Assembly (NCBI GenBank): GCA_002269645.1 | Contig: NIVC01002422.1 | Coordinates: 1-64,000 of the forward strand | Direction: 5' to 3' | DNA length: 64,000 nucleotides | From: Macrostomum lignano | Lineage: Eukaryota | Shown: piece after piece, positions 6,853 to 37,600 of the stretch | Layout: the number at the start of each line of letters is the position of its first letter | Position numbering within the stretch: the first letter of the stretch is position 1 | Position numbers and translations under genes: made by a program | Notes under the pieces: generated by a model | Databases searched by the model: none | Told to the model about the DNA's origin: nothing | The model's input: the letters and a program-made list of their open reading frames with translations, nothing else

Positions 6853-6887
6853 TTGCTAGTTTTCCGCATGTACAGTAGGTATGTGTA

Positions 6888-7987: not shown

Positions 7988-8000
7988 AAATGTAACTATA

Positions 8001-8366
8001 GGGGGCCGTAGCCCAGCGGTAGCGCAGCTGCTCTGGTGTGCCAGCGACCCAGGCTCGATTCCAAGTGCAGTCACATTAATTTGGGGCTGAATTGGAATCT
8101 CGGCTTGGCTCTGCTCGTGCAATTAACGGCCTTGAGAGCCAACCCCCCAAGGCGCAGTGAAGTGTACATGCCTAACGATAATATAAAGTTAGGGCCGTTG
8201 TACACTCCTGTGTGAGTGTGTGCCTGCGTACGTATCCGCGCGCTTGTATGCCTGCTCAGGGGAGTCGGCGGAATGGGCAGTAATGCCTCTCGCCGGTTGT
8301 GTGCCAATGTCGCTTAAAGTGCGCCAGGGTGCACACAACCCCCTGCCTCTAATAAAAAAAATAAAA
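8001..8366 (+). mobile_element. Full-length tRNA-derived SINE
   Basis: Pol III A box TAGCCCAGCGG and B box GGCTCGATTCC in the head; A-rich tail AATAAAAAAAATAAAAAA; 12-bp TSD AAATGTAACTAT at 7988..7999 and 8367..8378; homologous copies elsewhere in the window. Confidence 0.9.
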
Positions 8367-13600: not shown

Positions 13601-16600
13601 CAAAAGGCAATAGATAGGAATCTCACTTGCAATCCGCCGCATGCAGACGTGGCCAGAACATGCGTGCAGCCCTCGGACTTCAAGGCCCAAATGTTAGCTC
13701 TGTAGTTCACGTTCGTAGGGTTGAACTGGTGTCGGCGGCCGTGCCTGAGGCGCGGAGTCGAGGGTGGATAAGACAGATTACGTAACACAATGAGAAACAC
13801 GCCTGACCCGCTTCAAGTTGACCAGGTGTGTGGCGAGGGGTCATAACTCTAAGGGTGGTAACTGACCTGAGGGCTGAACCAAGCAGTCGAATTAGCAGCA
13901 TAGCTAACCACAGCCAACTCTACCTAACTGCCTAGACGCACTCTCGCGCAACCACGACCCCTGGTTCGATTCCGCGAGCGGCCAAATTTATTTGGGGCTT
14001 GTGTGCTCTAAAAATGGCCGGACTTTGTCGTGCGACTAACACCTATGAGAGCCAACCCTCAAGGCGCAGAGAGTGTACATGCCTGACGATTAGAAAGTCA
14101 GGGCCGCTGAACACCCTGACTAATCGTATATGACTAAGCGTGCCCGTCGAAACATTCACCCGGAAACTTCACCCAGAAATTAGTGATATGACAAATCCCG
14201 GAACAAAGCTTAATCCGGATGGATTTCCCGGCACATTTCACCCAGATCAGAGTGCTTGTTCCCGGATAACTCCCGGATCTTTCCCGAATCAGGTGGGTCT
14301 TGAAATCGGAAAAGATGGGAATATATCCACTAACATGGCGATTTTTAGCGGAAGCCTCCGATGGAGACCCGCTGAATACAGACCCCAGCAGATGGTTTAT
14401 CCCATCAGGCAAACCCTCGCATCCGTTTGGTCAGCGGCGCGAATTTCTCTTGGAAACACTGCACTGTAGCCTTCGTAATGTGAGGCCGTGCCCACCCTAA
14501 AAAGGTTTGACTCCCGATGGTATGTAGTCTGTCGCGGTTACTTAGTGTAACAGATCACCCCTTTGTCTGGTGCAGCTGGGTGTCTAGATGGAGCTGTCGT
14601 ATGGTTCCAAAAGCTCCTACTGACCCAGTGTCTAAGACAGCCTTTTCTATTTTAAGACACGCTATTCTAGCTCTTGCTAGATTGGGTTGTCTAAAGCGTT
14701 TGCAGTGTTGCTGAATACTCGATTAATGGCTACAAGGGGTAATTAATCCTCGATTTCACTACGCAATTATTTCTCTCTTCCTAAACCTTGGTCCACTTGT
14801 TTGTTCAATTCCCATGAGTATTTTTATCTCCTTTAAATGTTACTTTACATATAACTTGTGACATTGATTGTAATAAATTCCGGTAATTAAACAACCATTA
14901 CTGTCTTACTGTTATTTTCAGTTACAATATCATTTTACCCCCTTAGCATGACAGGAGGAGGTGGCGGCCGAGGCGGAAGCGGAACGGGGTCAGTTCAAAG
15001 TAAGTCTGTATTAATACTAGTATTATACATATACGTATGTTTATAAATGGCATAAATATTTACAAAAACATTTCCGTATTGTAGAGAGGTGTTACGTCTG
15101 CAACAAATTAGGCCATCAGTCAAAAAATTGTTGGCACAAAAAGAAGGCAAAGACACCGACACAAAAACCGCCGCCGCAACAGGATTCGCCGCAGGAGCAG
15201 GAGAAGGAGAAGCAAGACTAACCCAAGTGTTAAAAAACAGGCGCTGCGCCAGCGTGCATATGATTTGTGCTGTTGGGACTTGTAATGACTCTAAGCAGCG
15301 CAATTTTCTTGTACAACGTAATCTAGGTACAAACTATCAAGCAACTAAAATCGCAAGTCTGGTTTTCAGTTTTCACTTGGTGATCTATCTGATTAAAGCG
15401 CACAAGGATAAATATAAATGTGATCAATCCTTCTAGACAGTTTTTGTATTTCTTATTCGGTAAAACAGGTCGTATCAATTAATGCATGCTGTGCAATGTT
15501 TGCCTTTTTGCGGACTGCTGAATATTTAAGGTGATTGAAGTGTGAAATCCTCGGATATTTTTTTCAATCAGTCCATGCATATACCTCTGACAGTAGTACC
15601 TAATTAATATGCAATTATTTCAGCAGCTAATTTTAGAGTGTGGAGAATGTAATGAGTTGCTTACATGTATTTTATTTTTACTTCCTACCTACTAATGCTA
15701 CCATCTCATATTCGGCATACAGCGCGCATCAGTATAGTAAATCTTTCAAGCTGACTCCATCAGAACGAAGTTAAATTCTGCTCCGGTAAAGAGACAGAGG
15801 GTATTGTATAGTAAGTTCTAATTGGTTACTTTAAAAAAGTTATGTAATTAATGTAATTATCTGCTGGAACTGGTAAAGAATAATTAATTGGTTTGCTATT
15901 GGTAAATTTGTCTTCTGAAAATTCCGATTCAGAGAACAGTTGTTTTTAGGTGGAAAAATGCTTTTGCCTTCCATTCTTCTGTTTTCTCCTTTGAATAACT
16001 TTGTGTGCAACTTGAAATGGCACATACTGATGAATAGGTAGCTCACCCACTGATGGACACGTAGCTGACCCACTGATGGACAGGTAGCACATATTAATTA
16101 ATTAACGACTGCTAAACGTTAGAATATTATATTTTGTATACAAAGCCCACTAAGCTTCTTAGTTAGTTCTTAAAATTTAAGCCAAAAAAGATAAGAACAC
16201 TAATAAACCATCGCTTTAATAGCACATACTGATGGAGGGACTGTAAATACTCTAGTGGTACTTGGTGGGATAGCCTGCACGGGACAGTCTCGTCGAGACT
16301 GAATTGTGCATCGCGTTTAATTTGGAAATTTAGCGTAAGGTATTTTATAGTATGTACAAATATTGATCATTGCGAAATATTTTAGCAGTATATGTATACC
16401 TGCAGTTAATTTCTGTTTCATAAATTTTTTATAAATTTATTTAAACAGTTATGTATAAACTTTGTTTAAATTAAATTAAAAATGTAGCCCATTAAGCTTC
16501 TTAGTTCTTAATTTAGGTCATAGCCATAAAAGTTACGAACATTAAAACCATCGTCCCACCTTTGAAGACGACAGCGTCTTCATTCACTAGTTTAAGGTTT

Positions 16601-19600
16601 AATTTTTAAGTTGAGTGTTATACGCTCGTACATGGTCATCTGGTCTCATTTATTTTGTTTTAAGTAGATAAAATAGCGCTTTCTTGCAACTACGGCAAAA
16701 GCGATGTAAGGCCCCAAAGCAATTATTTATTGTATATATGCGTTTCTTAGCATAAGCTGCACTATGAACCGCCCAAACTCTTGCGTCCTTGCGTATTTAA
16801 CATTTGGGTCATCCTTATGTACCCTGAATGAGGGGATCGACCGGCTGCACAGATTGGAGACCATCTTATGGTCAAGTACTGGGCCGTCTTTCACGCTACT
16901 CCGAATTCGGCTGCGGTTCCAAAAAGGAATTGGTGGACAAGTTTCCCACTGAAGCGGCTAAAGTCGACGTGGCCACAGACGGGCGCTATGTGTGGCTCCG
17001 CACACATGCGAAGCACCCAGCCGGACAAGCAGCGCTCGGCGCCTTCTGGCCGAAAGATGCCAGGCAGCAGCGTGCCGTCTATGAGCTTCTTACTCAGTGG
17101 AGTTGGTAGGACACTGTACCCATGGTCGCACTGTCAGGTTCCCGACCGGCACCGCAGCCTCCCGTTCTAGTGCCTGAGCGCCACATATATCAAAGACTGT
17201 CTAACAACCGCTCTACCGATCAAATCTGCATAGAACAACAGCGGCAGTCGGATGGCTTTGCCAGAGCGGTGCAATGCGGCTGCAGTTTTTCTGTCAGGCC
17301 CAATCACGACGTGGCCTCTACGGCTCCAAATAGACATCCTGGGTCTTCTAACCGCTGCGTTGCGCGACCCGGTGCATGTCGCTAAAGGCTTCCAATGTTC
17401 GACTAACTGCCTACTACACCTCGTGTGCAACAGCGCCCGGACTATGGGCCTCGGTTACGAGACATACCTCAGAGGTCTCGGTAAGCCACGCCTGGCCGGC
17501 ACAGAGGCTATTGTCGATCGGAGCGACGCATTGTGTTGGTCACTCATAAATAATCGAGCGTCCCGCTAAGAGTGTAGCGAAGGCAAAAATGTGTCATCAA
17601 ACTGTTTCTTGATGCACTCGTCGCAGAGGGCGGCTCAGGATTTTGTCCGGCGGACAACGTTGCCGTCACTATTACTGGTGTAGAGGTTTAATACTGTGCA
17701 ATCGGCGATGCGTTCGTGCTCGAGGATATGTGGCAGATTGCCTCCTCTAACCTGCGACCAATTTGCCTGCTGAGATAGCCTGTGCAGAACTTAGAAATAG
17801 AACCTCTGCACACCATGTCAGGCGTTCTCTTCGAGTCGGACATCCGTGGGTGTCGCTTCTCGTGTACGGCAGCTCCTTTGTGACCCCTTTGGCTGCGTAG
17901 TGAATTTTTTACTGCATTTAATTTCTTCTTTTCGTCAGTAAGTGGTGCAAGGTACACGTTCCCCTCCTTACAATGATGTTCGAATCCATTGATGTATTTT
18001 TACTGCTGTGTCGCCCTGTAAAATCAAATGCTTTTGGCGGGCAGGCCAATAACAATTGTATTAGAACATTTTTAATACAAAGTATACCAATGTTTTCTCT
18101 AATTTTCGATGAGTAACATTTTATCGGTAGCTGTCTTCAGTATTTTATTGATTTTTGTTCCCAACTGTTTGTTATAGTTATTGTTTTCATAGTATACTTA
18201 TGACTTAGAACTACGGCAGCATAGTTATATGTTAAGCCCAGCTGATTAATTAAGTTGCAGCATGTAATTAATGGCGGCCCACCGCTAGGTCGCGCCGCGA
18301 AAGCCACTCACTCTGCAGCTAGTTGTAACCTATACAAAACGGCCTACAATGGCATATTATTTTCACGCTCATTCCAGTCAACGCGTGTACCGCTACAATG
18401 TCCAATCAACATTGCTACAATGTTTGCAAAGTGAACGCTATTCTGCGAGAGAATAGTGACCTTCGGCGTTTGCAACGCCAACGCCAGTCGAACTTCTCAG
18501 ATGAACAATTAAAAGTTGCCTGGGTACTCTGGGTACTCTGAAGTTGTCAGGGATGGCTCCTTAAAGGATCAATTGAAGTAGACCACACGCTACCTGAAAG
18601 TGCTGCTAGTGGAAAATGCACGAATTCGTCGGGAAATCGGCGCGGCACTGCCGCTACACCAGATACCAGAAATTTTCGTCCAATGTGGCGACGCTCACTA
18701 CCGAAGCGTCAAGAATGAGGATCTCTGGGTGTCTTAAACGGCAGTACGTGCAGCTCGTTCGGCGCCCGTGGTGCAGAGTGGGTGACCCCGGCTTCCGGGT
18801 GCGGAAGAAGAAACCTTTAAGCCGCGCTATGCGAGCCGAAGGCTGGCTCTCTGAGGCGACCCTTACCCCGACGAAGCCTGAGCTACCCACGGGCTAGAAC
18901 TAACGCCAAAAAACGCGTGGGCGCGGACCAGGGACTTCTTAAGCTAGCACCGGGACACACAAGGTATGGCTGTGAGCCACGGTTTCCCTGCAAGATAAGG
19001 CCGGTTTTTTACAGGGGGCATGGAGGAAATGCACAGACTTGCTTTGTCCGCTTGCTTATATACTTCGAATAATAGAAGGAACTTCCTTGATCCGTTTTCA
19101 TTTTGCTTGTGGCCCTTACAGAAATAATATTTTTAGTGAACTTACATTTGCATTAAATAAGTATTAAATTTAAGCATGGTCAACAAGTGCTCTGCAGTCG
19201 GATGCAAAAGTGGATACACAAGTTCTGCACTGCTGAAACTGTTACATTCCATTCTTTTCCACTGAACGACCGAATATTGCTAGAAAAGTCGAAGAAATCG
19301 ATTCCCAATCAAAACTTGGAGCCAACGAAGTACATGCGAATTTGCTCATTGCATTTTTCGCAGCAAGATTTCATTGAAGCGTCTCGGGACTCCTTTGGCA
19401 TTTAGTGCAAGAGGGACAGCAGCACGCTTAAAAAGCGATATCTGAAACCCAATGCTATGCCTACGATTTTTCCCAATGCAGCAAGGTATCTGTCAACGCC
19501 TCGACAGCCAGCGCAAAGCACGTGTTCAGCGACATCCTCTGCTCGACTCGACTTGGACAACATGCGTCTTCAGAGTGAGATCAACGATTTTTTGTTGAAG

Positions 19601-22600
19601 ACTCAATTCTCGATCGCACACCCGTGGAGATTCAGGAGTTGCTCGATGCAGAGTAGAGCCCACCTGCTCGATTTCACCACAGCATCTGCGACGGCCAGTT
19701 GTGTATTTACATGCTGGATGTGAAGCCAGTCTGCCGGATCACCTGTTCCATCTGCATTGACTCCGATCATAAAGTCCCTTAGAAAGTCCCTTAAAGTCGA
19801 TCTTAAAATATCGGTATCAACGGTTCCCCGCTGTCGAAGGACAAGGTGACTGACTTTGCTCGTAACGAAGGCATGATTTCTACGAGTACTATTAGTGGGC
19901 TGCTGAATCTTATGGCAAAGGTAAAGAACTGGAAGGAAAACACTAATCTGTCTGAGTCGCCTGAGCAGGCTAACGGCTTCCTCGACTTGGCAGAGGATAG
20001 CCTAACAAATGTGCTCGAACGGAAAGAAGACAAATCTGTGGCAGCAGCTACAGCTCAGTAGGACTAAAAAGGCAGCAAGAGTCTACTCTCAAGAGCTAAT
20101 AGTTCTAAGCTATATGATTTACTCTATCAGCACCTCCGCTTACAATGCTCTGTGTGAGCAAGAAGTTATTCACCTCCCGTCAGTGAGAACGCTGAAAAAT
20201 ATCACCAGACGAGTCGGACGGGATGGATTGAGTCGCCACGGCTACCTGCGCCTTCGAGCAAGTAAGCTGCTGACTCAAACGGTGAAAGTGGTGCTGCTAA
20301 TGGTGGATGAGATTTACATAGCTAACCGAATCGAATACTGCGCCGGGCAATTACGCGGAGTCGACGAATGCGGAGCGATAGCTACCACGTACTGCTGCTT
20401 AATGATTAAGTCCATTGCTGGGAAGTACAAGGACATGGTAGCAATGCATGCTGTGGCCAACTTAACAGCCAATAAGCTTCACACTTGGTTTTAAGATGTG
20501 ATGGAACTGCTGCCAGCTTTGAATTTTACTGTGATTGCCGTCTCACTTGACAATGCTGCAGTCAATCGTAAATTCGCCACTGACTACATCTGCGACGGAG
20601 AGCTCAAGACCTCGGTCATCGACAAAACCACGGGTCAGCCGATGTTCGTTTTCTTCGATCCTGTGCTCAACCTCAAGAACATCTACAACAATTTCCAATG
20701 TCCAGCCTTTCCACCTGTTTTGCTGCGCACTTGTGAGGCACAGTTTCAGCACATCACTGATTTGTACAACATCGAAGCCTGCAAAACAGTGCGACTAGCC
20801 CACAAGTTGAGTTCAACTGTAATCAGCCCCCGAAGCATTGAAAAATCATCCGCGAAGTTGGCAGCGGCGATTTTTTTCGAGTCGACACGCGACGCGCTCA
20901 AGTACTACTCCGATCACGAAAGAAAGAACTGGACCGACACCGCAGAATTCATCGGCGCTGGGCTTAAGCTCTGGAAAATTCTTAATGTCAAGACGGCATC
21001 AAAAGGCCGGCGAAAGCGCGACATAAATCAGGATCATGTGCGGTCATCTCTCGACTGGAAGCTTCAGTATCTGGAGGAATTCAGCGAGTTTTTTCAGGTG
21101 AGGAAAATAGAACATACATGTACTTACAACCAAAATAGGCCAAGTAGAGTAGAGTAGAGTATATATAGTATAGTTTACTTAAAAACGTACGTGTTAGTAT
21201 AGCAAAAGTATATGGCAAGAAAAAAAGCCAGTTTAAAATCCTTTTTATCTCATACACATAATTTCAGTCTTGGAAAACTTCCGGCAGCCGCGGCTTGTCC
21301 AGGAAGACCTTTCTGGCTTGTCGCCAACCTGCCGAGCTATCGCTGCCTGCGCGAGGCAACTTCTGGACCGTGAAGACTTTTCCTACGTCCTACTCGGCGC
21401 CCTGCAGTCCGACAGCATCGAGAGCAGATTCGGTTGGCTTCGCCAGATGTCTGGAGCGAACTATTGCATTTCGGCCAGGCAGCTCTCCGAGAACAACCGG
21501 AATATCGCAGCTATCAGTTTGCTCAATTTCTCGCAGTTTTCGTTCCAAGATATTGACCGTGCAATCGCCGAGTCGACTTATTTTCCTGATGTTATGTCCA
21601 ACATGAAGAAACTGGCTCAGGAGATCGCAGCGAAAATGGAGATGACTTTTCAGCCCGGAGAATCCGACTGCACTGTCATCTACTACATGAGCGGCTGCAT
21701 CGCAAAGAAGCTTCTGCAGAACAGGCGTGGCTGCGAGTCCTGCCGGGAGCTTTTGCTTGAGTCAGATTTTCTGCCTCCTCTTAAAGCAGATGCTCCGGTC
21801 CAGTCCGCTGCCTCCAATTTTATTGATGAGATCAATCGCGGCGGGTTGTCCAAGCCGGCTGCAATTGTTTTCAATCTCGCAAGCCACTGTCGGAGAATTT
21901 TTGAGGAGATTCGACAGAGCGAAACACTGCGAAGCCAGCTGCTCTGCGCTTCGAGCCAGGTGCTGCTGTTCTCCAACCTCGTGGACGAGCTGATGGAGGA
22001 TGATATCTTCATGGAAAGCTTCTTTGGTCTCACTATCTGTTCTCAAGGCCACTGCATCAAGGGCGGCGTTGTCAGGTTCTTCTTTAACTTGATGATGAAG
22101 AACCTGTCGAAGGACTTGTCAGCAGCGAGCACCGCTGCCAGAAGAAGTAGGAAGCTAGCGAAGCTTTCCAGCCTGTGCACGGACAAGTAAGGCAATGATC
22201 ATATCATATTCATAGGAACTGCATTAATGGACATTTTCTTAATTACTATGCTGTCAAATGTAGCTCATAGGTTAAAAGCTACCTGGAATTACCTTATGCT
22301 TTTTGGCACTTATGCACATTTCTGAATTAAAATTTCAATTACCACAAAGTTGCTGGATAGATGATGTTTTACTGCTAAAATGAAAACTGCGTTGCGATTG
22401 AAATTGCTATAAAATGTACTGAAAATTGCTTACTTGCTCTGAATTAAACGCTTTTATCTACTAAATTTTACTAAATAAATCAATAAGAAATTATAAAATA
22501 TACGTGAATAAGCTTCTATTTATCCAAATAACCATTTTTGGAAAGCAAATGCAAGCATATTATAGAAAATCGCATAAAATATCCACTAGCGTGCGTATCA

Positions 22601-25600
22601 CTTTTGCAAAATACAGCCACGCACATTTGGCCAAAACCGGCCTCATCTTGCAGAGGGTAAAAAACCTTGCGTGTCCCGGTGCTAGCTTAAGACCCGTGTA
22701 GAAGTCAGAGCGAGTGACTCCTTGGAGGTAGCGAGTACTTAGCGGGAAAACCACCGAGTAAATCAACTTTTTTTACACGGTAGCGCGTTTTTGCCAATTT
22801 TGTGACTCGCTACCAAAAAACGCGCTGGCTCACGGTCAAATACGCGGTGGTTTTCACGGTGGGAGCTCTCTCGCTGCTTGACTCGGTGGCCAACTCGCTA
22901 GCCGCTTCACTCACTCGCTCATTCTCTCGCTAATTCTCTCGCTTGTTAACAACGTTGTCTCGCTCATTCTCTCGCTTGTTGTCTCGCTCATTCTCTGGCT
23001 CATTCTCTCGCTTGTTGTCGCGCTCATTCTCTCGCTTGTTGTCTCGCTAATTCTCTCGCTCATTCTCTCGCTCATTCTCTCGCTTGTTGTCTCGCTAATT
23101 CTCTCGCTCATTCTCTCGCTTGTTGTCTCGCTAATTCTCTCGCTCATTCTCTCGCTTGTTGTCTCGCTAATTCTCTCGCTCATTCTCTCGCTTATTGTCT
23201 TGCTTGTTGTCTCGCTAATTCTCTCGCTCATTCTCTCGCTCATTCTCTAGCTTGTTGTCTCGCCAATTCTGTCGCTTGTTGTCTCGCTAATTCTCTCGCT
23301 TATTGTCTTGCTTGTTGTCTCGCTAATTCTCTCGCTTGTTGTCTCGCTAATTCTCTCGCTCATTCTCTCGCTTGTTGTCTCGCTAATTCTCTCGCTCATT
23401 CTCTCGCTTATTGTCTTGCTTGTTGTCTCGCTAATTCTCTCGCTCATTCTCTCGCTCATTCTCTAGCTTGTTGTCTCGCCAATTCTGTCGCTTGTTGTCT
23501 CGCTAATTCTCTCGCTTATTGTCTTGCTTGTTGTCTCGCTAATTCTGTCAGTGTACAAAAAATAATATATTAATAATAATTATTATTATATCGAAATATA
23601 TATTTTAAAGTGCGCAAATATTAACGGTGTGTCCTTTCTTTATTTTTACAGTACTCATTTCTGTTTTTTGAAGTTACCTTAATTTAGCATTTAGCATTTA
23701 GATTAGTGCTTAATGTAAGTTCTGCAATTCTGAACTCCCTTCAATTAGGTTGAATTTTATATTTATGACCGGGTTCACTGATTAGTCTTGGAGCCCTACC
23801 TATTAGGCCTTAGCACCGTCGGTAAACTGGAAATGAATAGACCAAGAGACTCACTGACTATTCCAGAGTAAATGCCTAAGGATAAAGAATCAAGACGCCT
23901 GCGCCTGCTAAACCAGCGAGCCATGCGCTCCCTGGCTCAGCTCGCTGTAGCAGAGCAACAAGCGGAGCAGCAGCCAAGGGCCCGGCGGGTCAGAGGAACT
24001 CCCCAGCAGGCTGCAGTAGCTGAAGCTGCCCCTGCTCCCCAGCAGGCTGCAGTACTCGAAGCTGCCCCTGCCGACAATGACGTCTTCATGTACGTTTCAG
24101 ACGGCGACACTATCTACGAGGAAGAAGGCGACAAAACGCGCTCCTTTCCTGATGTCTTTCAAAACGCTGATGTTGACGCCGCTGCCATCGATGATCAGGA
24201 GGAGTATGTCCCATACCAGCCTGCTGACGCAGCGGGGGACAACTTCATGGACGGTGAGCTTGACGTCGCCGATCTGGAAGAAGCCATTTTCGGTCCGCGA
24301 CCGGCCACTGACGATGACGATAGGAGAGGAGGCTACGGAGTGGATGGAGTTCCTACCAGGTATGTGATTGAATTGTGTTTCGACTACTCACGACGTACTT
24401 TTTACTTTGTACATATGCATCATATGTACTATAACTATATATTAACTAGATTCTATTAACGTATATACTCCTCTATAAAGTTACTATGTACACACCACTT
24501 ACCTATCACAGGTTGCGTCCCGACACCGTCGCATATCCCGGCGCCAAATACACGCATAATGGCATTGCGGTCCTGGCCTCCATTTTGGTCGACCGATACA
24601 GTCTGCCTCAAACGTTTTTGAACGACCTGCTGATTTACACAGGCGAGATTCTGCCCGCGGGCAGCGTCTATCCAAAGACTGCCTTCGTCTGCCAGAACAT
24701 CTTCCGCGGAGCATCCGCTCAACGGCGGCAGTTCTGCCCCCGCTGTAGTGTCGAGGTGTCGAAGGCAGATGTCGAAGGTGAGGTAGCATGCAGAAACTGC
24801 GCACTATTGCTCTCAGCTGGCATTGTCAGCAACTTCTGGTGCTTCAACATAAGGCGACAAATTCAGCAGCTGGTTGAGCACTCCCATCTGCTAGATCATG
24901 TCACCTTTCCGGTGGACCAACCCGCAATGCCTGGTTGCCTACAGCTGGGATCAAGTGCGGAGTATATGCACTTTAAGCGCAGCATTCCGCTACATGATCG
25001 GCAGGATTTGTCATACACCGTTAATATCGACGGATTCCCCCTGTTCATCAATTCAAGGGGAGAAATGTGCCCAGTTTATCTCGTCATAAACGAAATAACG
25101 GAAGAAGCGCGGAAGCCGAAGCTAATAGTCATCTGCGGCCTCTGGGCAGCTTGCAAGAAGGTAAAGGCCGTTGCTTTCCTTCCGTGGCTTGTCGCGGAGC
25201 TGAACGATTTGCGCCGCGACGGCGTGAAGTACAGCACTGGAGGAGATCTTGCGGGTACGACGCCGGGTGTCCTGCGCCTACATCCGCTCCTTTTTGTAAT
25301 GGACGCACCTCAGCGAGCTGAAGTGATGTGCCTTAAACGTCATAACTCGGTGCACGGCTGTGACAATTGTTACAGCGTCGCTGTGTTCCGCCGAGGCGCG
25401 CCACGCTTTCTGTATGACGATGGCGGCGAGGGTATTGCTAAGGCCACGGAGGCGGGATGCACCCAGACCAGCGTGCGAAACTTAAGTGACACGCTGATGC
25501 TCGCCAATGCTGTTCCAAGAGGACGGGACAATTTGCTGGGAGTGATGGACGTATCCAAGCTCCTGCACTTAAACGGCTTCGACTACATGCACGGGTGTCC

Positions 25601-28600
25601 ACCCTGTTTGCTGCACCAGGGCTACCTGGGTGTGGTGAAGTGGAAGTGGACCCAGCTGTTCCACCCGATGAAGAAACCGGACCCAATGGCACGTAGCCCT
25701 GATCTGTCGGCAAAGGTCGCCGACATTGATGCAGCGGCGTCGCGAGTTCACGTTCCGCTTGACCACCAGCGTGCACCCCGCACCTTGCGTGAGGTCCTGA
25801 TGTTCCGTGGCCACGAGTTTCAGACCTGGCTACTTGTGTACGGTCCAATGACGTTGGAGAGTGTATTTACTGCGGCGAACGCACTAAATTACTATCATCA
25901 CCTCCTACTCCTAGCGGCGCCGCTCTTCTGGATGACATTCGAGGGTGCGCCGCTGACCGAGGTCCATGCAGCTGAGGTCTCTCTGCTCTATTACCATCGG
26001 CTTCTGGGCGCAATGTACTCCGACGCTGCGATGACGTACAACGCACATCAAGTGTGCAGGCACCTAGGTAATCAGAGAACTATATTGTCTATATGTAGAA
26101 CTATTCTCTACTAATACCTACTTCTAGATCATCCTTGATCGAAACGCAATATTGCAGTACTAATATGTATTCGTACGTATAGCTTTTGTCATGCTATCTC
26201 AGCCTAGGGACATCCAAACTCAGCCAGCCCCATTCCGCAATGCGTTTTTTGGCTCGAGCTAGTCGAGTTTTACCATAGACATGCTTCTTAAGGCCATGCT
26301 ATCTCAGCCTGGGACATGCAATCTCAGCCAATATAGATTTCAATTGCAAACAGATCTCAATGCTATCATTTCTGTAACGTGACATGAAATGGCAACAAAC
26401 AGCAATGAATGAACGCAGCAAGAAAAGTCAGTAAGAATCTGAAAAGTGGCTGAGATTGCATGTCCCAGGCTGAGATGGCATGGCTTTAAGAAGCATGTCT
26501 ATGGTAAAACTTGACTGGCTTACGTAAAAAATCGCACTGTTGAGATGGGCTGGCTGAGTTTGGATGTCTCTAGGCTGAGATAGCAGGACAAATACTATAC
26601 TAATTGGCTGAACTGTCGCCCATATTTGCTTTTTAACGCCCAAACTCCTTATTAGGAATGTACGCCGAGTTGTACGGGTCGCTGTGGAGGCTTTCTGCTG
26701 GGCTTTTCGAGTCAGCACACTGCGCCATGCGACGTCGCATTCACGGTACTCGCCGCGTGGACGTGGAACTGGCGGGGATTCTGCAACGCCAGTTTGAGCG
26801 CCGTGACATGCAGGCCCGTCTGAAAATCAGCAATCCATTTGACTTTGAGAGAGACACTGACGTTCGCACTGCAGACGGGTGTGTGCTCCGCGAGTCGCGG
26901 ACCACTATGGCCGACGCCGGGGCTCGGGCATTCGCCAGTGCCACCCTGAGCAGCGGTACGCGAATTGCTGTGTATCAGCCAGGTATGCGAAGGCAGAAAA
27001 TTGTTTCCTGCTTTGTTGCCTACAGCGTGGACCAGCACCGCCGTGACTTGTTTGAATTTGGTCGAGTGGAGGGAATTTATGCCCGTAAATGAGCACCACT
27101 GTACTGTTGCGCCGTCTACCGACAAGGTCCCTGCTGCAGAACGAGCACCACTTGCTGCATTTGTTGGGGATCGACTCCAACCATGGCTGCCGATTCTCGC
27201 ACGTGCGTCGAATCTACGTGGATCCGTTCGGACCACTGTCGCCATTTTATTTCGAGGTGCCTGCATCTAGCATTCTGGCCGCCTGCTGCGTGAACGACAC
27301 AAAAGTTGGCTTCCTACCTCATCGTCAATATTCATTTGCGGCTTGAATTGACATGAAGTTATGACTATAATATACGAGTATATTCGTGTTCCATTTTTTT
27401 TACCTGTTGTCGGTTGTTTCTGTAAACCCTAATTACTACGAGTAGTACTATAGTACTATACGTACTGTAAGTTACTGCACTGTACCTGCTAGATTGCTGA
27501 ACCGCTATAACAATGACATTGTCAGTAAATGTATACATATGTATATTCATGAATATATTAAAAAATTACATAAAGTAATGAAATTAGCTGCAGCGACCGT
27601 AAAGCGACTTCGGCTTGAACAGAAGTTATTTCATTCACCATTTTTATCAGTACAGCGACTACTCGTTTGATAGGTTATTGAAGACCCAAATCCTCCTATA
27701 TTAAATATAATTACCCTCAGTAGTTTAGCTGTCGAACAAGTAGAGTAGCTTCAGGGCCATCCGGGTAGATAAATCGACGGGTATCTTCTTAATTAAGTCA
27801 TCGTTTCAGAATTATTAATTATCCGTCCCATAACAATGTGAACTCTGTATATACTCGCCTGTACCCCGTAAGACACCCGTCTCTCATAAGCGAATACGTT
27901 GTGTGCACTGTATCTTAAGGAGGGAAAATATACTATGCAGATATCATGGACGTTTCAGCTTGTCTGAATGGAGCCCAAGACTTCCTGGCTGTCTAAAAGG
28001 TCTCCCGCGGGCGCTAAAGTGGCGCCACCGCAAACATCGGAGTCGCATAAAAATATAATAAATTTCTATAAACTCGACAAAATCGAAACTGACAACGGCC
28101 CAGCGCCAAAAAGAAGAAAAAATTGGCTTTCGAAAGACCCTGAGCCAATCGAGAATGAATGGCTCCGCGAAATGGTCGCAAAGCAGCGAGTTTCGCATCT
28201 GGCCGGCGCTGCAGATGTGTCTAGGGCCGGCGCTGCCGATGCTGACCAAGCAGCCAAGGCCGGCGCTGCCGATGCTAACCAAGCAGCCAACCTAGAATTA
28301 GAAGCCAGATGCCACGCCGCAGTGGCGCAAGCTGAATTGGCTATTCAGGTGCTGTTTTATAATTAATTACTCTTATAATGGATTACATGCACATCTGATG
28401 TGTAATTAATGCTTTTCTCAACCCTTTCATGCCGATGTAGGAATTAAATATGGCAGCGGGCCAGCAGCAGGAATTGCTGGCCGCGCAGCAGACTATTGCG
28501 TCGCTGGAGGCCAGCCTTCAAGCCCACCAACGACGAGCAGCTGCTGCACGGCGACACCTACGCGCGGCCACCCGTAGTGGTATGCCCATCCGGCCGCTAA

Positions 28601-31600
28601 GACGGGTGCTACGGGTGTTGGAAATGCCCGTACGAGACTAGGCGCCTAGCCGAAGACGCGATGGCTGCCATCGCCGGTCGCGAGGCCGCGGCGTCGAGCA
28701 CCGCTCAACCGGTGGTGATGCACCACCGCCCTGAGACGTGCCCCCGCTGCACCAGCCTCCTCTCTGAGGCGGCGCAATTGCGCAGCAGTGTTAACGATTA
28801 TGAGGCGCGCCTAGAACGACTATCAGCGGCTTCGATAACGGCGAGAAACGAAGAAATGGCACGCAGCGACGAAATTCAACTGCTGAAAGACGAGCTCGTT
28901 GCAGAGCGGCGCAACAGCGACCGTCTGAAAAAAGGAATAGCTTATTGCTCGAAACGGTACGTTCGAGCTACGAGCAGTTGCGCACCGTCAGCAGCTACCT
29001 GACTGAAATTGACAGGGAGGCAAAAAAGTCTGCCGTCAGCAGCAGCAAAATTTGCAGCCTCGTCAAGGACGTTGGCCTTTGGGCGACACAGCAGGTGTTA
29101 CCATCGCCATCAGGTGCCCCAGATGCTGTGGATGCTGCGGATGCTGCAGAGTCTGCGTCGCCACCCGGCTTAGACGCCGAGCTCGAACAACTTGAGTCTG
29201 GCCACAGAGTGACCTCGGCCCAGCTTAAAATGGCCCTCTCCGCCGCTATGACCGCGTCCGCCAACTCCTCTGCCGCCGTTGCAAGCAGCAGCAGCCTCTT
29301 GCCAAATTTGGGTGCTGTCGCGGCACGTACGTCGTCGTCTTCGCCGAGTGGTACCAGAAGCACAGATTTAAGGCAACTGGAGCTACCCTTCATCGAGGGG
29401 TACAGCGACATTGTGACGACGAAAGCAAACTGCGACAAGCTGGCGGATCTAGTTGATGCCTGCACGGCAATGCCGAAAGCGCAGAAGGAGAAAATGGCGC
29501 TGTATCGGGCAATTTTACGCGCCGTTTTTACAGCGCAGGAGCTGGCCACGTCGTCATGGTCGGGGAGAGCTGTCGAAAAGGGCGACAACCGACCAGAGGC
29601 CAACAAGCGCAAGAAAAGCGCCGTTCTGGCTTTTCTTAAAGACAACAACCTAATGGTCACTGACGAAAGTGACCTGGCGACCTGTTACCGTGCTGTCGCG
29701 CGTTTGGAGCGCAACAAGCTCGAAGACCAGTCGAAGTCAAACGGTAAGTCACGCGGAGGCCGATCAGTTACTGCGGCCGTTGTCCGCGGCGACGGCAACG
29801 AAGGAGAAGCCGAGGCCGGGCAGCGCTGCGGCCGTTGTCCGCGGCGACGGCAACGAAGGAGAAGCCGAGGCCGGGCAGCGCTGCGGCCGTTGTCCGCGGC
29901 GACGGCAACGCGGGCGAGACGCCGACGGCAGGCAGCGCTGCGACCATTGTCCGCGGCGACGGCAACGCGGGCGAGACGCCGACGGCAGGCAGCGCTGCGG
30001 CCGTTGTCCGCGGCGACGGCAACGCGGGCGAGACGCCGACGGCAGGCAGCGCTGCGACCATTGTCCGCGGCGACGGCAACGCGGGCGAGACGCCGACGGC
30101 AGGCAGCGCTGCGGCCGTTGTCCGCGGCGACGGCAACGCGGGCGAGACGCCGACGGCAGGCAGCGCTGCGGCCGTTGTCCGCGGCGACGGCAACGCGGGC
30201 GAGACGCCGACGGCAGGCAGCGCTGCGGCCGTTGTCCGCGGCGACGGCAACGCGGGCGAGACGCCGACGGCAGGCAGCGCTGCGGCCGTTTTCCGCGGCG
30301 ACGGCAACGTGGGCTAGACGGTCGGTGCCGGTACCAATTTTTCGGCTTCCGTTATATAGAGAAAGAGCAAGACAGCAATTATAACTCTCTGAAAACAAAA
30401 ACTTATAACTCTTTACTTTCTAGCTACTTTAGAAGAATGCATAACTGCGTAGTACTTTTTGGTTTCGGTAGTTTTCTATAGTTTTAGTTTTCGAGTAAAT
30501 CTAAAGTAGTTTTAGTTTTTTTGGCCAAAAAATTTTTGGCAACTGGTCAACTATGAAAAAACAGTAACTGCAAAAAACAACTGAACATGTTACAATCCTT
30601 CAATGTAGTCTCCCCCTCTCAAGGCACTTTTGGTGGTGCCGCCGAATCCATGCTTCGAATGCGCCATGGTACTCAGAAGCAGGTATGGCCTTCAGTTCTG
30701 AATTGATGCACTTGGCCAGGTCCTGGCATCGGTGAAAATTCCGTCCTGCCAGCCGTTCAGTCAGCTTGGCGAACACCCAGAAGTCGCAGGGAGCCAAGTC
30801 AGGACTGTAGGGTGGGTGACAGATGGTCTAGATGTTGTTGGCTGCCAGAAAGTTGGTCGTCAGGGCCGCTGTATGACTGGACGCATTGTCATGGTGCAGG
30901 CGAACTCGCCCAGCTTGAAGTCGTGAGCGCATGAAAACGTAGAATCGCCACTGGTCTGGTTGCACTGGCTCCATTTTTTGCAGAGTGTAAAACACCACCT
31001 TGCGTTGGCCACGCGCAAGTATATCACATTTGAGGGAAAAAAGTCATACTCTATGGTTAAAACCAATTTATGTCTGCGATCTCGTAAAAAAATTTCAACG
31101 CTTTGTGATATGTACTTTTGGAGATATTAGGTCAGTTGCCAAAACTTTTTGAATGCCCCTCGTAGTAAACGTTCTGGTGCTTTTCTTTTCTTTACTATTT
31201 TCTTTACTTTAGCATTTTTTTCGTACAAATCCTTACAATGCGCCGTATAAATGTCATCTTTATGAATTTACCGTACAAAGCCGTACAAGAAGGCGCCGTA
31301 TAATGTCATCTTCATGAACATAACTTCCAAATACTATTTCCAGCTTTAAGCCATAAATATACTGTACCGTTTTGAACCAATTTAATATATAATAATTTAA
31401 TATATATAATTTGTAATTATAATTGTAATTTGTAAGTATAATAAATATAATTTAATAAATAATTTGAACCAAGTAATTAATTGGTGTGCATACTTCATAT
31501 GAAAAATCGAGCGCCGTTTTGAGCGCGAAACTGCGGCATCCGGTGAGCTAAGCCACTGCATTTCTATTGTATAAGCGCGTCAAGTCTAGAGATGGGAAAT

Positions 31601-34600
31601 GAGCGAGTAACAGTAGCGAGAGAATGAGCGAGTAACAGTAGCGAGAGAATGAGCGAGTAACAGTAGCGAGAGAATGAGCGAGAGAATGAGCGAGTAACAG
31701 TAGCGAGAGAATGGGCGAGAGAATGAGCGAGTAACAGTAGCGAGAGAATGAGCGAGAGAATGAGCGAGTAACAGTAGCGAGAGAATGAGCGAGAGAATGA
31801 GCGAGATAATGAGCGAGTAACAGTAGCGAGAGAATGGGCGAGAGAATGAGCGAGTAACAGTAGCGAGAGAATGGGCGTGAGAATGAGCGAGATAATGAGC
31901 GAGTAACAGTAGCGAGAGAATGGGCGAGAGAATGAGCGAGTAACAGTAGCGAGAGAATGAGCGAGAGAATGAGCGAGTAACAGTAGCGAGAGAATGAGCG
32001 TGAGAATGAGCGAGATAATGAGCGAGTAACAGTAGCGAGAGAATGGGCGAGAGAATGAGCGAGTAACAGTAGCGAGAGAATGAGCGAGAGAATGAGCGAG
32101 TAACAGTAGCGAGAGAATGAGCGTGAGAATGAGCGAGAGAATGAGCGAGTAACAGTAGCGAGAGAATGAGCGTGAGAATGAGCGAGAGAATGAGCGAGAG
32201 AATGAGCGAGAGAATGAGCGAGAGAATGAGCGAGTAACAGTAGCGAGAGAATGAGCGAGAGAATGAGCGAGAGACAATAGCGGGAGAATGAGCGTGAGAA
32301 TTTTTACAAAAAAATGCTTTTAGCGAGTCAGCACCGTGCGAAAATGAGCGAGTGCAGGGACATAAACTCGGTGTATTTTGCACGGTCTTTGAATTTTTTT
32401 TGAGCGCGTTAACTCGCTCTAACTTTTACACGGGAGAAGTCCCTGGCCGGGCGAGGCATGTAATCCGTTGCTGCCGTTAGTGCCCAACAGCCAGGTGACT
32501 GCTGATAGGCCAACGCGAGAAATCACTCACTTTTCCGCGTACTAAACGCCACTGTATAGTGTGACTCGCTGTTTTACTATGTACTATTATGTATCTGCAC
32601 GGGCATGTATACGTGTCTATAATCCTAACAGACTGCATCTGCTAAGACACCAAAACATTTCAAAAGACGAGTGCTAGCATAATACACACAGGCTAACTGA
32701 GCGTGCCTCTAGCACATGTGGAGCACAGATGCAATTTGCTTTCAGTACATGCCTTCTTCACCAACTAACAACTATTCTCCATGTTTATACCTAAACCTAT
32801 TCTAATCATGTCAGTTGTGTAATTCAGACGGTAATCTCATTGAAATGACTATTAAATATTTTATCGTAAATGCATTGTGCATGTTTTGGTAATTAAAGCC
32901 GCACGCGTACGTGAGCACTAATTGTTAATTTTAACGTATAAGGGTAAATTGTATATAATTTACTTATAGGAGCACTTCGTGGGTTGCACATAGGTCGCTT
33001 ATTCGTTTAGTATCATACATGCGCAACAGTCGGCCGAGTCGGCCAATCCGGCCGACTGATTTGGCGGCCAACCAAGGAAGTCGCAAAAATGCCCACCCAA
33101 AAAAATACTAAAGTAGTAGTACTAAGTAGCTGACGAGGCATTTTGCCTTAATAAAACAGTCATAGTTACTCCTGCCGTTTACCCAAAGTTGCGTTAATTT
33201 TGCGTTTGGGTTTTTTTACATGTAAGTCGCATTTTTGGCCAAAAACTACGTCGCATTTTTGTTAAAACTAAGTCGCATGGCCGACCGAATTTTGAAGGTT
33301 GTGCATGTATGTTTAGTATACTAGTGTACCGGTATACTAGCACAATGAGTAGCTAGTGATGTACACTTTTTGAAATGTTTTGCGAAGTAAAACTGTTTAG
33401 CAGCATACATTCCGTTCTCTATTCAAATCTCTCGCAGATACGCAGCAAATACGCAGCTCCAACATCGCGCTTTGAACGACGAGACTGAACTGGCCGAGCT
33501 AGCACATCGAGAAAGAGGTGGCTATGACTTCACCGAAATAAAAAAAATACTTTCGGGCATGAAATATGTTCATTGTTCGGCGCCTCTGTCGATCCTGATG
33601 CCGTCGAAATCGACTGTGCAGAGGAGACTACCGGTGGAGATGAGCCGGCTGAACTACAAAGGAGCGGCATAAAAAAGCCCACGGCGTACTACATTCAATA
33701 ACCTCTAAGCTCTGGGCAGGCGGAAGAGCTGCAAAAGAGCATGGACGCTGTCCTCGAGTCTCAAGACACACTCTGCATGAGCTGGAATTCCGGCCCAGCA
33801 AACAAGCAACGATCGGGTGTTTCTCTAACCTACGGCATTTCTTGTGTACGTGGAGGAGCGTCTGGCCGTAGAAAAGGCACTAGAGAAGGCTCTAGCAAAG
33901 AAGCACAAACTTTCCACTTCGAATAACACCAAGGATAATAAAGCAGCGGAGGCGGCCAAAGCTTGCTTAATCCAAACTGTATTGCGCGCCGCATTTACGA
34001 CTGATGGATTTCGGACGTCCATCGCAAGCGGTCGCCGGAATTCCAACGAAACAGCCGGAGTAGTTCGCTCGGCTAACAACGTCAAACTGGGACTTATGCG
34101 GGTGTACTGTAATAGCAGTGGCATGTCCATAACGTTAGCCAAAGTTCATCATGCCTTTGGACGCTGTCGAGAGAACCTCATTTTTAATGCCTGGCCTGAT
34201 GAAGTCCGCGAGCGCAATGTGTCGCAAGTCAAGGTCAGAAGTTTGGCATTGCGCGAAAGTGGCAACGAACAGCCGCATCAAGCGGAAAATGCCAACCGAC
34301 GCGCTGGCATAGACGCTGCCAGATCTCCTCTCGGAGGGAGGTGCAAGAAGAGGCGCGTTGAAGAAATTGCCCCACCACCCAAAGCGATGGCGGTGACGCA
34401 TTATTCGACTCCGACGACAATCTCATCGAGGAAGAAGCTGTCGATGCGACGCCCACGTCAACAGCCGAACTAAATCCAACGGATTTATTAGATGCATCAA
34501 ACGGCCCTTGTGGACATCGATTAAGGAATGGGAATAATGATCTAATAACGAAATGAAACTGGTATACAGGGATAAAAAGTATACGGACAATCTGCTGGCT

Positions 34601-37600
34601 TCATTGATGCTCAATAGGTTGTAGATTGACGGAAGTCTGTACTCTGTGCCAAATATAAAAACTTTGGCTTCCGCCTTAAAGAAAGCTGGAATTCTAATCG
34701 CTGTTCGATCGCGAACAGCTTTTTGGATGGAACCCATCTCTGCAAAAGTATTACACAAAAATTTCTTTCCTTTTAACTGGAGACCTGGATCAAACACTAA
34801 TCCGTTCAATTCGCCGGGAAACTGACTCAGATAGACCGTCCGGAACACTTTGTCTTTTGCGGTTCAAAGTTCCGGAAATCTGTGTTCCCCGATCCGGCAT
34901 TTTCGCCTGGAACGTTTCTGCTGATCTGGGTCTCAGTTGCAGGAAAAAAAGTATGAATGCCCGGGTCATGAACAAAATCCGGATTTCGTTACTCTTTTGG
35001 GCTAATTCCCTGGATCAAACTACATTACAGAATTGGAAAAATTTCCGGGAAAAGCCCACAACTTTTCTGTGGGTGCCCACAACTCTCCTGCAGCTATATA
35101 ATACACAAAAAAGCTTTTAATTGGTTTCTATTAAAAAAGGATATCTCACCTAGCAAGCAGCACACAAGGCACAGAGGAAATCTGGCCGCAGACCAGCACA
35201 TCAGACGGCTCGCCATATGGTGTGTTGACCGACTTCTCAGAGCGATTTTCTAGAAGGTCAGGGTTGTCCAGGCCAGAGCCACCAATGATTCCAACCTGAA
35301 GGGGAAATACGAAAATGGGCCGTTACTTGAAAAAACCAAAATTGCCTTACAATTAATAAAAACCCTCTTCTATAGTTAAAATATTATTCTAATATAAGCT
35401 TTAATGCATTGCCTTCGATGATAGCTTGAAGAAGACCCAGGCCCTATTTATTATGTAAGAGCAAAGTTTTAGCCATTTTGTAATAGTACAAAGTATTTTG
35501 TAGGAAGTTTTTATCAAGCTAATAACTTGCATGTTATTGCTAGTCTAGTGTCTAGTATGTCTAGTGTCTAGTATGTCTAGTATGTCTAGAGTTTAGCCAT
35601 TCCTTGTCAATATTACCTAAAAACACTAAAATGCTCCTATTCACTCTATTTAGTATTATTTTCTTATCCACCATAGAACACATTGCACTGCAGAAGCTAG
35701 GCTTCACATTCTGCCAGATAGATTCTTTTAAGTATTCGACTGAGAGCCCAAACTCTATATGTGCCCATACATATAAGTGTGTGTATAATTTTTTATTCAT
35801 TTATATACCGGCGGTTTAGAAGTTACTATTAGGGCTAAATACTTTTGGAACACCGGATTATTAGAATATTATAAATCAGTTGAAGTTGTCCATTTAGACC
35901 TCGAGTAGGCTACATCTAGAGATACATAAAATAATCGCTTAAAATATAGTCAAAATGTTATGGCAAAATTTATAGCATAATATTTTTATAGGGCTTAGTA
36001 GGCATAATCAATGATAAATGACACTGAAAGTTTTTCATCTTCTTGATTTTATTGCAAAATGCAGAATCTGTTAGGTCAAAAATTATATAAAATAAAAAAC
36101 ACCACACTTAGAGACATGGCAGTTATATCTATAATGCTAAAAAACTTATAGAAATGGTGGCCATGTCTATATCTCTGAATACTAACAGTGCATAGGTCTA
36201 TAATCTTTGACATGGTGGCACTAGTAGTGCAGTTTTGTTTGAGAAATTATTTTTCTTTTGGATTTGTGCCAGTTCCAATGATTTATAATGCTGACAACAT
36301 TTCAAAGTCATAGTCACATTGGTTGGCAGTATTTTACAAAATTATTTTTCATTTGAATTTGCACCAGTGCTGAGGATTTGAATAGATGATTTGAGCAATA
36401 ATGCTGTGACAAAAAAGTCTACCCTGTGAGTTATCTATGGCCCAAAGGGGTGATATCTGATAATTGCTAAGTGTGAAAGAATAATTTTTACTAAATCTAT
36501 TTTTTCTAAAGCAAAAAGTATTTTTATAAACATACAAGCTATTGAAACCCATGGAATTTGAACCCGGGGAATTCTAATCCCCAGAACTATTTTGCATGCA
36601 TTCTAAAATCTGAAGTCATATTCACACAAAAACTTATTGATCGTTAGGATAGAGGGAAATATAAAATGGAGTTACATTTGTGTAAAATTAGGATTTAAGG
36701 CAACCATTGATATAGTTGGCTGGGGTGCTGTGCAGAATGTCAGCAAATGTCTGTCTGACTTTAAAAACTATATTGGCAAACTCTGGCTTCTGCCTCTCTC
36801 TCTAAGTCCCCTGGATCTTTGAAACTTCCATCTTCTCTTCTGTTTCCTCTCTTCTCTCTCTCTCCTCTCATCTCTTCTGTTCTTTCTTCTCTCCTCTCTA
36901 CTCTCTCCCTCTTCCCTCATCTCTCTTCTCTCTCATCTTTGCTCTATCAGCTCTCCTTTCTCTTATTTTATCTCTGCTCTCTTATCTCTTCTCACTTCTC
37001 TGTCCCCTTTTCTCTCTCTTCTCTTCCCTCCCCTCTCTGCTCTCTCAGCCCTCCTTTCTCCTCTTTATCTCTTCTCATTTCACTCTACTCTCTCTTCTTG
37101 TCTCTGTAATCACGTCTCCCTTATCTATTCTCTCCCCTCTGTTCTCTCTACTATTTCATCTGTCGTCTGTTCACTCTCGTCTCTGCTCTCTTATCTCCCC
37201 TCTCTCTTCTGTCATCTTTACTCTCTTATATGTTTTTAACTCTTCTCTGTACTCTTTTCTTCGTCTCTTTTGACTCCTCTCTTTCTTTCTCTTCTCTTCT
37301 CTACCTTCTTCTATACTCTTCCTGTCTTCTTTCCTCTCTTTGCTCTCCACTCCCTCTCTCCTCCTTCATCTCTCATCTCTCCTTTCATTGTTCTCATCTC
37401 TACAACCTTATCGCTTCTCTCTTCCCTTTACTCTCTCTTTATCTCTCTTTTCTCCTCTTTCCTCTCTCCTTCTTCTCACTCCTCACTCTCCCCTCTCTCA
37501 ACAACTCCCTCTTCTTTCTAATCTCTCATCCCCTGTTTTCTCTCTACTCTCTGTTTTTATTTCTCATCTCTCCTATCATCTCTCAACTCTCTCCTCTCTC

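Follow-up and report, generated by a model that had tools for sequence, protein, structure and literature searches.

A nested stack of DNA transposons fills most of an MTAP intron in Macrostomum lignano

The stretch analysed here, referred to as the window, comprises the first 64,000 nucleotides of Macrostomum lignano scaffold NIVC01002422.1, and it carries the gene MTAP on its minus strand. Four MTAP exons lie at about 35301-35150, 13744-13627, 11843-11439 and 11121-10957, as located by tblastn with a human MTAP sequence (used for placing exons only). Between the first two is an intron of 21.4 kb, of which 20.9 kb is a stack of transposable elements (TEs), one inside another; the average M. 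lignano intron measures 1.1-1.4 kb (PMC5730564). An earlier reading of the same DNA, made from the letters alone and here called the sequence-only reading, had proposed a four-level nest in this intron, and its core, a transposon-in-transposon stack that fills most of the intron, stands. The intron limits it gave (13745-35149) are also exact, since the coding of the exons and the GT..AG ends define 21,405 bp; on the minus strand the splice sites read AG/gtgaga at 35150/35149 and ctcag/GCAC at 13745/13744. The protein joined from the exons is 100% identical to the partial M. lignano MTAP PAA47974.1.

The 90% cluster of M. lignano MTAP contains three GenBank proteins, BOX15_Mlig016180 g1, g2 and g3, encoded on three scaffolds of assembly GCA_002269645.1. 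The window represents g2 (bases 1-45256 of the g2 locus, L002, are 100% identical to window 1-45256), and empty sites were sought by comparing it with g3 (L001, NIVC01004275.1) and g1 (L003, NIVC01002013.1). Most loci of the Mlig_3_7 assembly occur as three such paralogous subgenome copies, which differ by ~2% in single-nucleotide polymorphisms (SNPs) and by 32-36% with the length of indels included (PMC10733133). The features of the intron and its flanking exons are as follows (TIR, terminal inverted repeat; TSD, target-site duplication; SINE, short interspersed nuclear element; MITE, miniature inverted-repeat transposable element).

35150-35301, minus strand: MTAP exon upstream of the big intron, encoding 49 residues that end in ...VLLAR; the annotated protein P0271 (PAA58015.1) is continuous over the junction
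13745-35149, minus strand: inflated MTAP intron, 21,405 bp, with GT at 35149-35148 and AG at 13746-13745
13627-13744, minus strand: MTAP exon downstream of the big intron, encoding 39 residues that start HGRRH...
13952-14142, plus strand: 5' part and body of a SINE-like repeat, with other copies at 8048-8365, 57008-57268, 58960-59235 and 11895-12046
14143-18928, no strand assigned: left arm of the outer shell, probably an old non-autonomous DNA transposon, with terminus CCCGTCGAAACATTC and CC(C)GGA motifs clustered at 14159-14290
18929-22692, plus strand: main body of a P-like element, with a 28-bp TIR at 18929-18956 and the beginning of the right TIR at 22673-22692
22693-32434, plus strand: CACTA-superfamily-like element, 9,742 bp, with TIRs, TSD AGA at 22690-22692 and 32435-32437, and an empty site in g3
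26180-26597, no strand assigned: fold-back MITE, 418 bp, with arms of about 151 nt and TSD TA at 26178-26179 and 26598-26599
30526-31162, minus strand: internally deleted mariner remnant, with the C-terminal part of a DDD transposase
32438-32445, plus strand: last 8 nt of the P-like right TIR, AGTCCCTG, separated from the rest by the CACTA-like insertion
32446-35073, no strand assigned: right arm of the shell, with terminus (reverse complement) CCCACAGAAAAGTTG and TCCGG(G) motifs clustered at 34814-35050, inverted
33014-33311, no strand assigned: 298-bp MITE in the right shell arm, with 14-nt TIR CATACATGCGCAAC and TSD TTTAGTAT at 33006-33013 and 33312-33319
35074-35115, plus strand: A-rich 3' tail of the SINE-like repeat, matching the consensus GGGTGCACACAACCCCCTGCCTCTAATAAAA from 35071

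The P-like element is bounded by 18929 and 32445, exactly as first read. Its left TIR is CAGGGACTTCTTAAGCTAGCACCGGGAC, and the right TIR lies in two pieces, at 22673-22692 and 32438-32445; once the CACTA-like insert and one AGA are removed, the two repeats match at all 28 positions, as expected of P-superfamily termini. On the plus strand it encodes, in this order, THAP (19229-19375; 32.2 bits, Pfam gathering cut-off 23.9), TNP-like_RNaseH_N (20273-20581; 31.9 bits, cut-off 24.6) and TNP-like_GBD (20672-21001; 33.5 bits, cut-off 24.8), that is, the THAP domain and the RNase H-like domain with GTP-binding insertion that mark the P element/THAP9 superfamily. It thus shares with that superfamily the N-terminal THAP domain, the interrupted RNase H-like domain, an 8-bp TSD and a TIR of roughly 30 bp (the Drosophila P TIR is 31 bp long). 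Unlike its relatives, the window's element shows decay: its reading frame is broken by a TAA at 20492-20494 and shifts before 21237. Another transposon also splits its right TIR.

The left TSD of the P-like element, GCGCGGAC, occupies 18921-18928, and in g3 the right flank is GCGCAGAC, identical at seven of eight positions; TSDs of 7-8 bp are typical of the superfamily. The window has no such duplication (GCGCGGAC versus GCCGGGCG). There and in g1, 27 nt outside the right end of the element (GCCGGGCGAGGCATGTAATCCGTTGCT, window 32446-32472) stand in place of the 10 nt of g3 (GCGCAGACGT); this replacement, 11 nt from the CACTA-like insertion point, erases the TSD, and no template for it was found in the window. 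The TSD in g3 shows that the flanks of the P-like element, which form the two shell arms, were still contiguous DNA when the element inserted.

The CACTA-like element lies within the right P TIR, and here the paralogs provide an empty site. The g3 sequence jumps from window 22693 to 32472, and reads GCTTAAGACGTCCCTGG where the window has GCTTAAGA, then the 9,742 bp, then AGAAGTCCCTGG. At the insertion point itself g3 has gtcccggtgctagcttaagaCGTCCCTGG, and the window has ...gcttaaga/CCCGTG...9,742 bp...CACGGG/agaagtccctgg, so that AGA is found on both sides of the element and once in g3, in keeping with the 2-3-bp TSDs of the CACTA / En-Spm (CMC) superfamily. The limits first proposed for this element, 22693 and 32434, are exact.

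The two MITEs have empty sites as well. For the 298-bp element, the limits and the 8-bp TSD were read correctly, with a perfect duplication in the window (TTTAGTAT, 298 bp, TTTAGTAT) and a single GTTTAGTAT in g3. For the fold-back MITE, g1 jumps from 26179 to 26598 and reads cgtacgTActaatt with a single TA. The element is therefore real, but the flanks by chance continue its palindrome, and the limits 26177..26600 proposed for it thus included 3 nt too many at either end; the empty site in g1 gives 26180..26597. (The arms as first measured were 154 nt long and 87% complementary. An end at 26166 with a TACTAAT TSD is ruled out by the same empty site.) This MITE, which sits in the gap between two coding blocks of the CACTA-like transposase, resembles the Stowaway-like and Tc1-mariner-mobilised MITEs and fold-backs in its TA target duplication, its 418-bp length, its lack of coding sequence and its long inverted arms. 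It differs from them in that most of its length consists of the arms (~151 nt), and its TIR is not that of the mariner remnant 4 kb away.

The distribution among the three copies is then simple. The shell and the P-like element are present in all of them; g3 lacks the CACTA-like element and the 298-bp MITE; and g1, which has the CACTA-like element with its mariner remnant as well as the 298-bp MITE, lacks only the fold-back, which occurs in the window alone. Empty-site alleles in paralogous MTAP copies had been suggested as a check, and those in g3 (CACTA-like element, MITE) and g1 (fold-back) show the insertion order P, CACTA-like, fold-back, beyond what could be read from the termini. By geometry alone the order is SINE-like repeat, shell, P-like element, CACTA-like element, and fold-back or mariner, with the 298-bp MITE within the shell. 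In 500-bp steps over 12.5-34 kb, the window and g1 are ~100% identical, tandem arrays and the fold-back excepted, and g3 is 92-98% identical to the window over the shared parts. Since the identity of the window and g1 is ~100% around the fold-back, the insertion of that element is younger than essentially all point differences between the two. The decay rank given earlier (shell, P, CACTA) is roughly true but soft, because the P TIRs match at 28/28 positions and the CACTA-like TIRs at 21/23, yet the P reading frame is lost; presence or absence among paralogs is the better clock. Comparison of the window with itself gave no second copy of the shell, the P-like, CACTA-like or mariner elements, the fold-back or the MITE.

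The mariner remnant fits this order less tightly. Its coding sequence, on the minus strand of 30603-31126, matches DDE_3 (E = 2.9e-5) and the SETMAR/Mos1 catalytic domains (E = 1.6e-10), and at 31162 it ends in the complete TIR, CGAGGGGCATTCAAAAAGTTTTGGCAACTGACC, with TA next to it. On the opposite side similarity begins at CAAAAAATTTTTGGCAACTGG (about 30526), the outer ~12 nt of the TIR are missing and no TA is visible. With a DDD transposase, TA and a TIR of roughly 30 bp it belongs to Tc1/mariner, truncated at one end; of the limits 30527..31162, the right one holds, while the left is only where similarity stops. The remnant has no empty site of its own, and is missing from g3 only since its CACTA-like host is missing there. 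Its nesting is accordingly positional, and it may have arrived before or after the CACTA-like element reached MTAP, perhaps carried in by it.

The name CACTA is probably right for the inner element at the superfamily level, as judged by transposase homology, 3-bp TSD and subterminal repeats, and wrong for its termini, which are CCCGTGTAGAAG / CCCGTGTAAAAG and read CCCGTG, not CACTA or CACTG. The TIRs are CCCGTGTAGAAGTCAGAGCGAGT and CCCGTGTAAAAGTTAGAGCGAGT. Inward of them a 12-bp unit, CTCGCTNATTCT, forms subterminal arrays at 22914-23546 and, in the opposite orientation, at 31598-32301. The transposase is encoded at 24450-26111 (a frame of 554 codons), 26664-27077 and 27092-27343. The 554-codon frame has no Pfam match, and a word-indexed protein search with this open reading frame (ORF) also gave none, the index having missed relatives that appeared later in a full HMMER scan of 1.8 billion representatives, which returned 2,299. 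The closest are M. lignano proteins (40-45% identity). Relatives at ~25% identity (phmmer E = 1e-23 to 1e-29 over 430-490 residues) carry the Pfam domains Transposase_21 (Tnp2) and DUF4218; Transposase_21 scores above cut-off in two of these distant homologues, and the link from the window's ORF to it is transitive. The gap between coding blocks that holds the fold-back (597 nt, or 177 nt without it) may be an intron; its counterparts in two related families measure 9 and 109 nt. Within the second large ORF, at 29771-30320, is an array of a 57-bp unit (9.7 copies, 96% identical), which encodes a repeated arginine/alanine-rich peptide and differs in copy number between the window and g1.

Three further M. 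lignano loci were fetched, and each contains a related element with CCCG ends (L004 9054-22915, L005 7391-16488 and L006 7390-16481). The two copies of the Mlig001703 family (L005 and L006) are 99.6% identical, lose similarity exactly at CCCGCTGGAAAATGG.../...CCGTTTTCCAGCGGG, have CCCGCTGGAAAA at their ends, and are flanked by the 3-bp TSDs AAG/AAG and GTC/GTC, which suggests recent transposition; L006 also has a partial second copy (21855-27637, matching L005 10699-16488). A third family has CCCGATTGAAAATC at both ends and subterminal GTCGGCACTGCCC arrays, and the ends of the relatives are also given as CCCGATTGAAAA. M. lignano therefore holds a Tnp2-related group of three families with 3-bp TSDs, subterminal arrays and CCCG-N3-GAAAA termini. 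Like the CACTA / En-Spm elements (CMC: CACTA-Mirage-Chapaev), the window's element has a 3-bp TSD, inverted 12-bp subterminal arrays, a second large ORF, a total length of about 10 kb, and a large transposase whose distant relatives carry Transposase_21 (Tnp2) and DUF4218. It is unlike them in its termini, CCCGTGTAGAAG, and in a transposase without a Pfam match of its own, linked to the superfamily through homologues of 25% identity.

The outermost layer is a repeat of about 320 bp, of which the window contains five copies, with an A-rich tail and a GGTTCGATTCC-like box. We call it SINE-like; neither ARAGORN nor Rfam found a tRNA-like head. (Variants without the central ~100 bp exist, and a further copy lies at L004 8498-8645.) For two full-length SINE-like copies, none of 2000 shuffles reaches the score of the tail match to the right of the shell. 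The flanks of the shell are thus collinear parts of one SINE-like repeat, and the 20.9-kb block interrupts a single repeat copy. The shell had been placed beside a SINE; it lies inside one, which adds a level to the nest. The estimate of ~470 bp for the intron without the shell, part of it SINE, proved accurate, with a computed length of 474 bp of which at least half is SINE-like repeat.

We consider it likely that the shell itself is a single old transposon whose limits lie no more than a few bases from 14143 and 35073, although as a single transposon it is the weakest level of the nest, probable and not proven. CCGGA occurs five times in 14143-14300 (expected 0.09, P = 4e-8), and TCCGG five times in 34800-35073 (expected 0.18, P = 1e-6); these inverted clusters at the two shell ends are the sole ones in about 230 kb of M. 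lignano DNA examined. The ends, CCCGTCGAAAC / CCCACAGAAAAG (also CCCGTCGAAACATT / CCCACAGAAAAGTT), conform to the CCCG-N2-3-GAAAA pattern seen in the three CACTA-like families. The ends proposed from the letters are therefore probably real to within a few bases, but the CCC..GGG reading of them is not unique.

Several observations count against a single CCC..GGG transposon. The shell is present in all three paralogs and has no empty site, ~96 bp of the SINE consensus are missing between the two parts at its junction, and only 9 of its 14 terminal bases pair. There is no clean 3-bp TSD (GTG versus TGC, TG alone being shared), and GCGTGCCC (14138-14145) agrees with GGGTGCCC (35071-35078) at seven of eight positions, a direct repeat G[C/G]GTGCCC that is a rival 8-bp TSD. 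The SINE tail consensus also contains GGGTGC, and at the left end CCC can be aligned with GTGCCT of the SINE. Shell ORFs of at least 45 residues on both strands matched a single Pfam family, zf-CCHC, and that weakly (E = 0.01). When 161 CACTA-like transposases were compared with the shell by tblastn, there was no credible match and no transposase remnant; tblastx and blastn of three CACTA-like elements gave no credible similarity, and a word-indexed protein search with six concatenated shell ORFs, including ones over both termini, gave no homologue. A second copy of the shell was likewise absent from the 230 kb. The zinc-knuckle match (15087-15131, plus strand) hints at foreign debris, and may be a remnant of a retroelement gag or chance. 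A stretch of 30 residues in which one shell ORF resembles ORF2 of the CACTA-like element (E = 0.001 in a single comparison) was rejected as too weak, and the BEN-like domain suspected there is unsupported by Pfam.

The shell might accordingly be another class II element, for instance hAT- or P-like, with the 8-bp TSD G[C/G]GTGCCC and the ends GTCGAAAC.../...TTTTCTGT, or it might be old intronic or SINE-associated DNA made of several decayed repeats; in either case the proven nest would have three TE levels, P, CACTA-like and fold-back, in unclassified DNA. We regard this as unlikely. All readings of the shell ends imply the same pre-insertion sequence, ...GAGTGCGTGCCCACAACTC..., so that the SINE alignment cannot choose between them. 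The 8-bp model, however, leaves the outermost three bases of both ends unpaired and needs a chance GGG..CCC target, while a CCC three bases before GAAA is found at both ends and is the spacing of the three CACTA-like families of the same genome; for these reasons the limits 14143 and 35073 are favoured. The inverted motif clusters, unmatched elsewhere in the DNA examined, and the contiguity of the shell interior implied by the P TSD also argue for a single element.

A different alternative leaves the layers in place and removes their dates. If g3 had lost the CACTA-like element and g1 the fold-back by excision, the pattern among the paralogs would say nothing about when they inserted. Two features of g3 weigh on this side, namely that it is one base (C for A) off the reconstituted P TIR, directly beside the AGA target, as an excision footprint could be, and that the 27 nt immediately outside the P end differ between g1/g2 and g3; the long reading frames of the CACTA-like transposase count on this side too. 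Cut-and-paste excision usually leaves bases added or lost, however, and both empty sites have exactly the pre-insertion length and a single copy of the target. With g2 and g3 diverging by 3-4% in this stretch, a single SNP is not surprising; g3 retains the P TSD and thus has the ancestral look there; and for kilobases on either side of the fold-back site g1 matches the window at ~100%. Excision therefore seems improbable, and the empty sites were probably never filled.

That the nest is an artefact, with repeats misjoined in the PacBio assembly of a polyploid genome, is very hard to maintain: although 36% of the length of Mlig_3_7 lies in scaffolds chimeric between subgenomes (PMC10733133), and the window's switch from g1-like to g3-like near 34-35.5 kb could mean that it is one of them, this switch falls outside the nest, every junction has the expected TSD and TIR logic, and all nest junctions recur in the independently assembled g1 scaffold NIVC01002013.1, those of the shell and the P-like element also in the g3 scaffold NIVC01004275.1.

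The switch is part of a wider mosaic of similarity. Over the first 11.5 kb the three copies share ~100% identity. Between 11.5 and 34 kb the window goes with g1, and g3 is 92-98% identical; between 35.5 and 45 kb it goes with g3, and g1 is 78-97% identical, without a match beyond 41 kb. Either the subgenome copies have recombined or undergone gene conversion, or the scaffold is chimeric. The gene adjoining MTAP (L003 37964-46776, roughly window 1-8800) falls where the three scaffolds are ~100% identical, and is annotated with a product of 3,018 residues with HYR, Ephrin_rec_like, EGF and Laminin_G_3 domains.

Taken as a whole, the locus is best explained, with good confidence, as an originally short intron that was enlarged by successive cut-and-paste insertions, each into the previous element. 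In the proposed series, a SINE-like repeat would first have entered the intron, and a non-autonomous DNA transposon of ~7.1 kb, the shell, probably of the CCCG-ended CACTA-like group, would then have inserted into that repeat. Third, a P-superfamily element would have entered the shell with an 8-bp TSD. Fourth, after g3 had separated from the other two copies, the 9.7-kb CACTA-like element would have inserted into the right P TIR with a 3-bp TSD, and the 298-bp MITE into the shell with an 8-bp TSD. Fifth, and very recently, the TA-flanked fold-back MITE would have entered the CACTA-like element in the window's copy only. The last three steps, and the interruption of one SINE-like copy by the shell block, are read directly from junctions and empty sites; treating the shell as a single transposon with ends at 14143 and 35073, and giving the mariner a place in the order, goes a step further.

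Nested insertions are well known, for example as layered retrotransposons in maize intergenic regions. As in maize, younger elements lie inside older ones and the geometry gives the order. Unlike in maize, the MTAP layers above the SINE are all class II, they are intronic in a conserved metabolic gene, and empty sites are provided by subgenome copies. Nested class II insertions in an intron are to be expected in a repeat-rich, recently polyploid genome, and do not constitute a new kind of biological system. The value of the MTAP locus for M. lignano genomics is that it records DNA-transposon activity in compact form and dates it internally against the recent genome triplication: the shell and the P-like element predate the split of the three copies, and the CACTA-like element and one MITE postdate the split of g3. 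Locally useful is the dated evidence that a CCCG-ended CACTA-like family and a TA fold-back MITE were active after the duplication. The locus also illustrates how subgenomes can differ by about 2% in SNPs and by more than 30% when indels are included (PMC10733133).

More tentatively, the inner element and its relatives may form an undescribed flatworm clade of the CACTA/Mirage/Chapaev type, with CCCG-N3-GAAAA ends, and this clade and the TA fold-back may have been mobile after the recent M. lignano genome duplication, the fold-back in a haplotype that is ~100% identical apart from it. We hold this to be somewhat less probable than its opposite. If true, M. lignano, a flatworm model in which heterologous transposon vectors have performed poorly, would have a cut-and-paste system of its own that may still be active.

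For MTAP itself, the three copies in the assembly are nearly identical, and the annotated proteins of all three are uninterrupted across the big-intron junction. The annotation derives from a genome-guided transcriptome (PMC5730564). The uninterrupted proteins give indirect support to splicing across 21.4 kb, with the caveat that three near-identical mRNAs could cross-map; we infer that the intron is still spliced in the window's own copy, g2. The coding sequences of the P-like and CACTA-like elements are on the plus strand and MTAP is on the minus strand, as had been noted. The further argument that a housekeeping enzyme must be spliced across the nest is weakened, in that there are three near-identical MTAP copies and one of them has an intron ~10 kb shorter. 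A conserved metabolic gene can thus carry TE-filled introns of 11-21 kb, which break some gene predictions. In the UniRef model A0A1I8GP06 (232 residues), the first 21 residues are translated from the 3' end of the big intron (window 13745-13812, minus strand); an earlier gene prediction thus failed to bridge the intron, and the N-terminal exons were lost. The exons at 13627-13744 and 11439-11843 contain copy-specific residues, with NICALK in g3 where the window and g1 have NIWALK, and HIPTAEPFCDHT in g1 where the window and g3 have another stretch of 12 residues. These could act as tags for the expression of single copies.

The window is also dense in minisatellites, at 6896-7986, 12105-12648, 36800-39600, 51735-52715, 54987-55975 and other positions. 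Their units include 24 bp (45 copies), 80 bp (6.8 copies, in the next MTAP intron), 33 bp (30 copies) and 21 bp (47 copies), and the stretch of 3 kb at 36.8-39.6 kb has a strong strand skew and degenerate repeats. This density agrees with the reported content of 15% simple and tandem repeats in the M. lignano genome.

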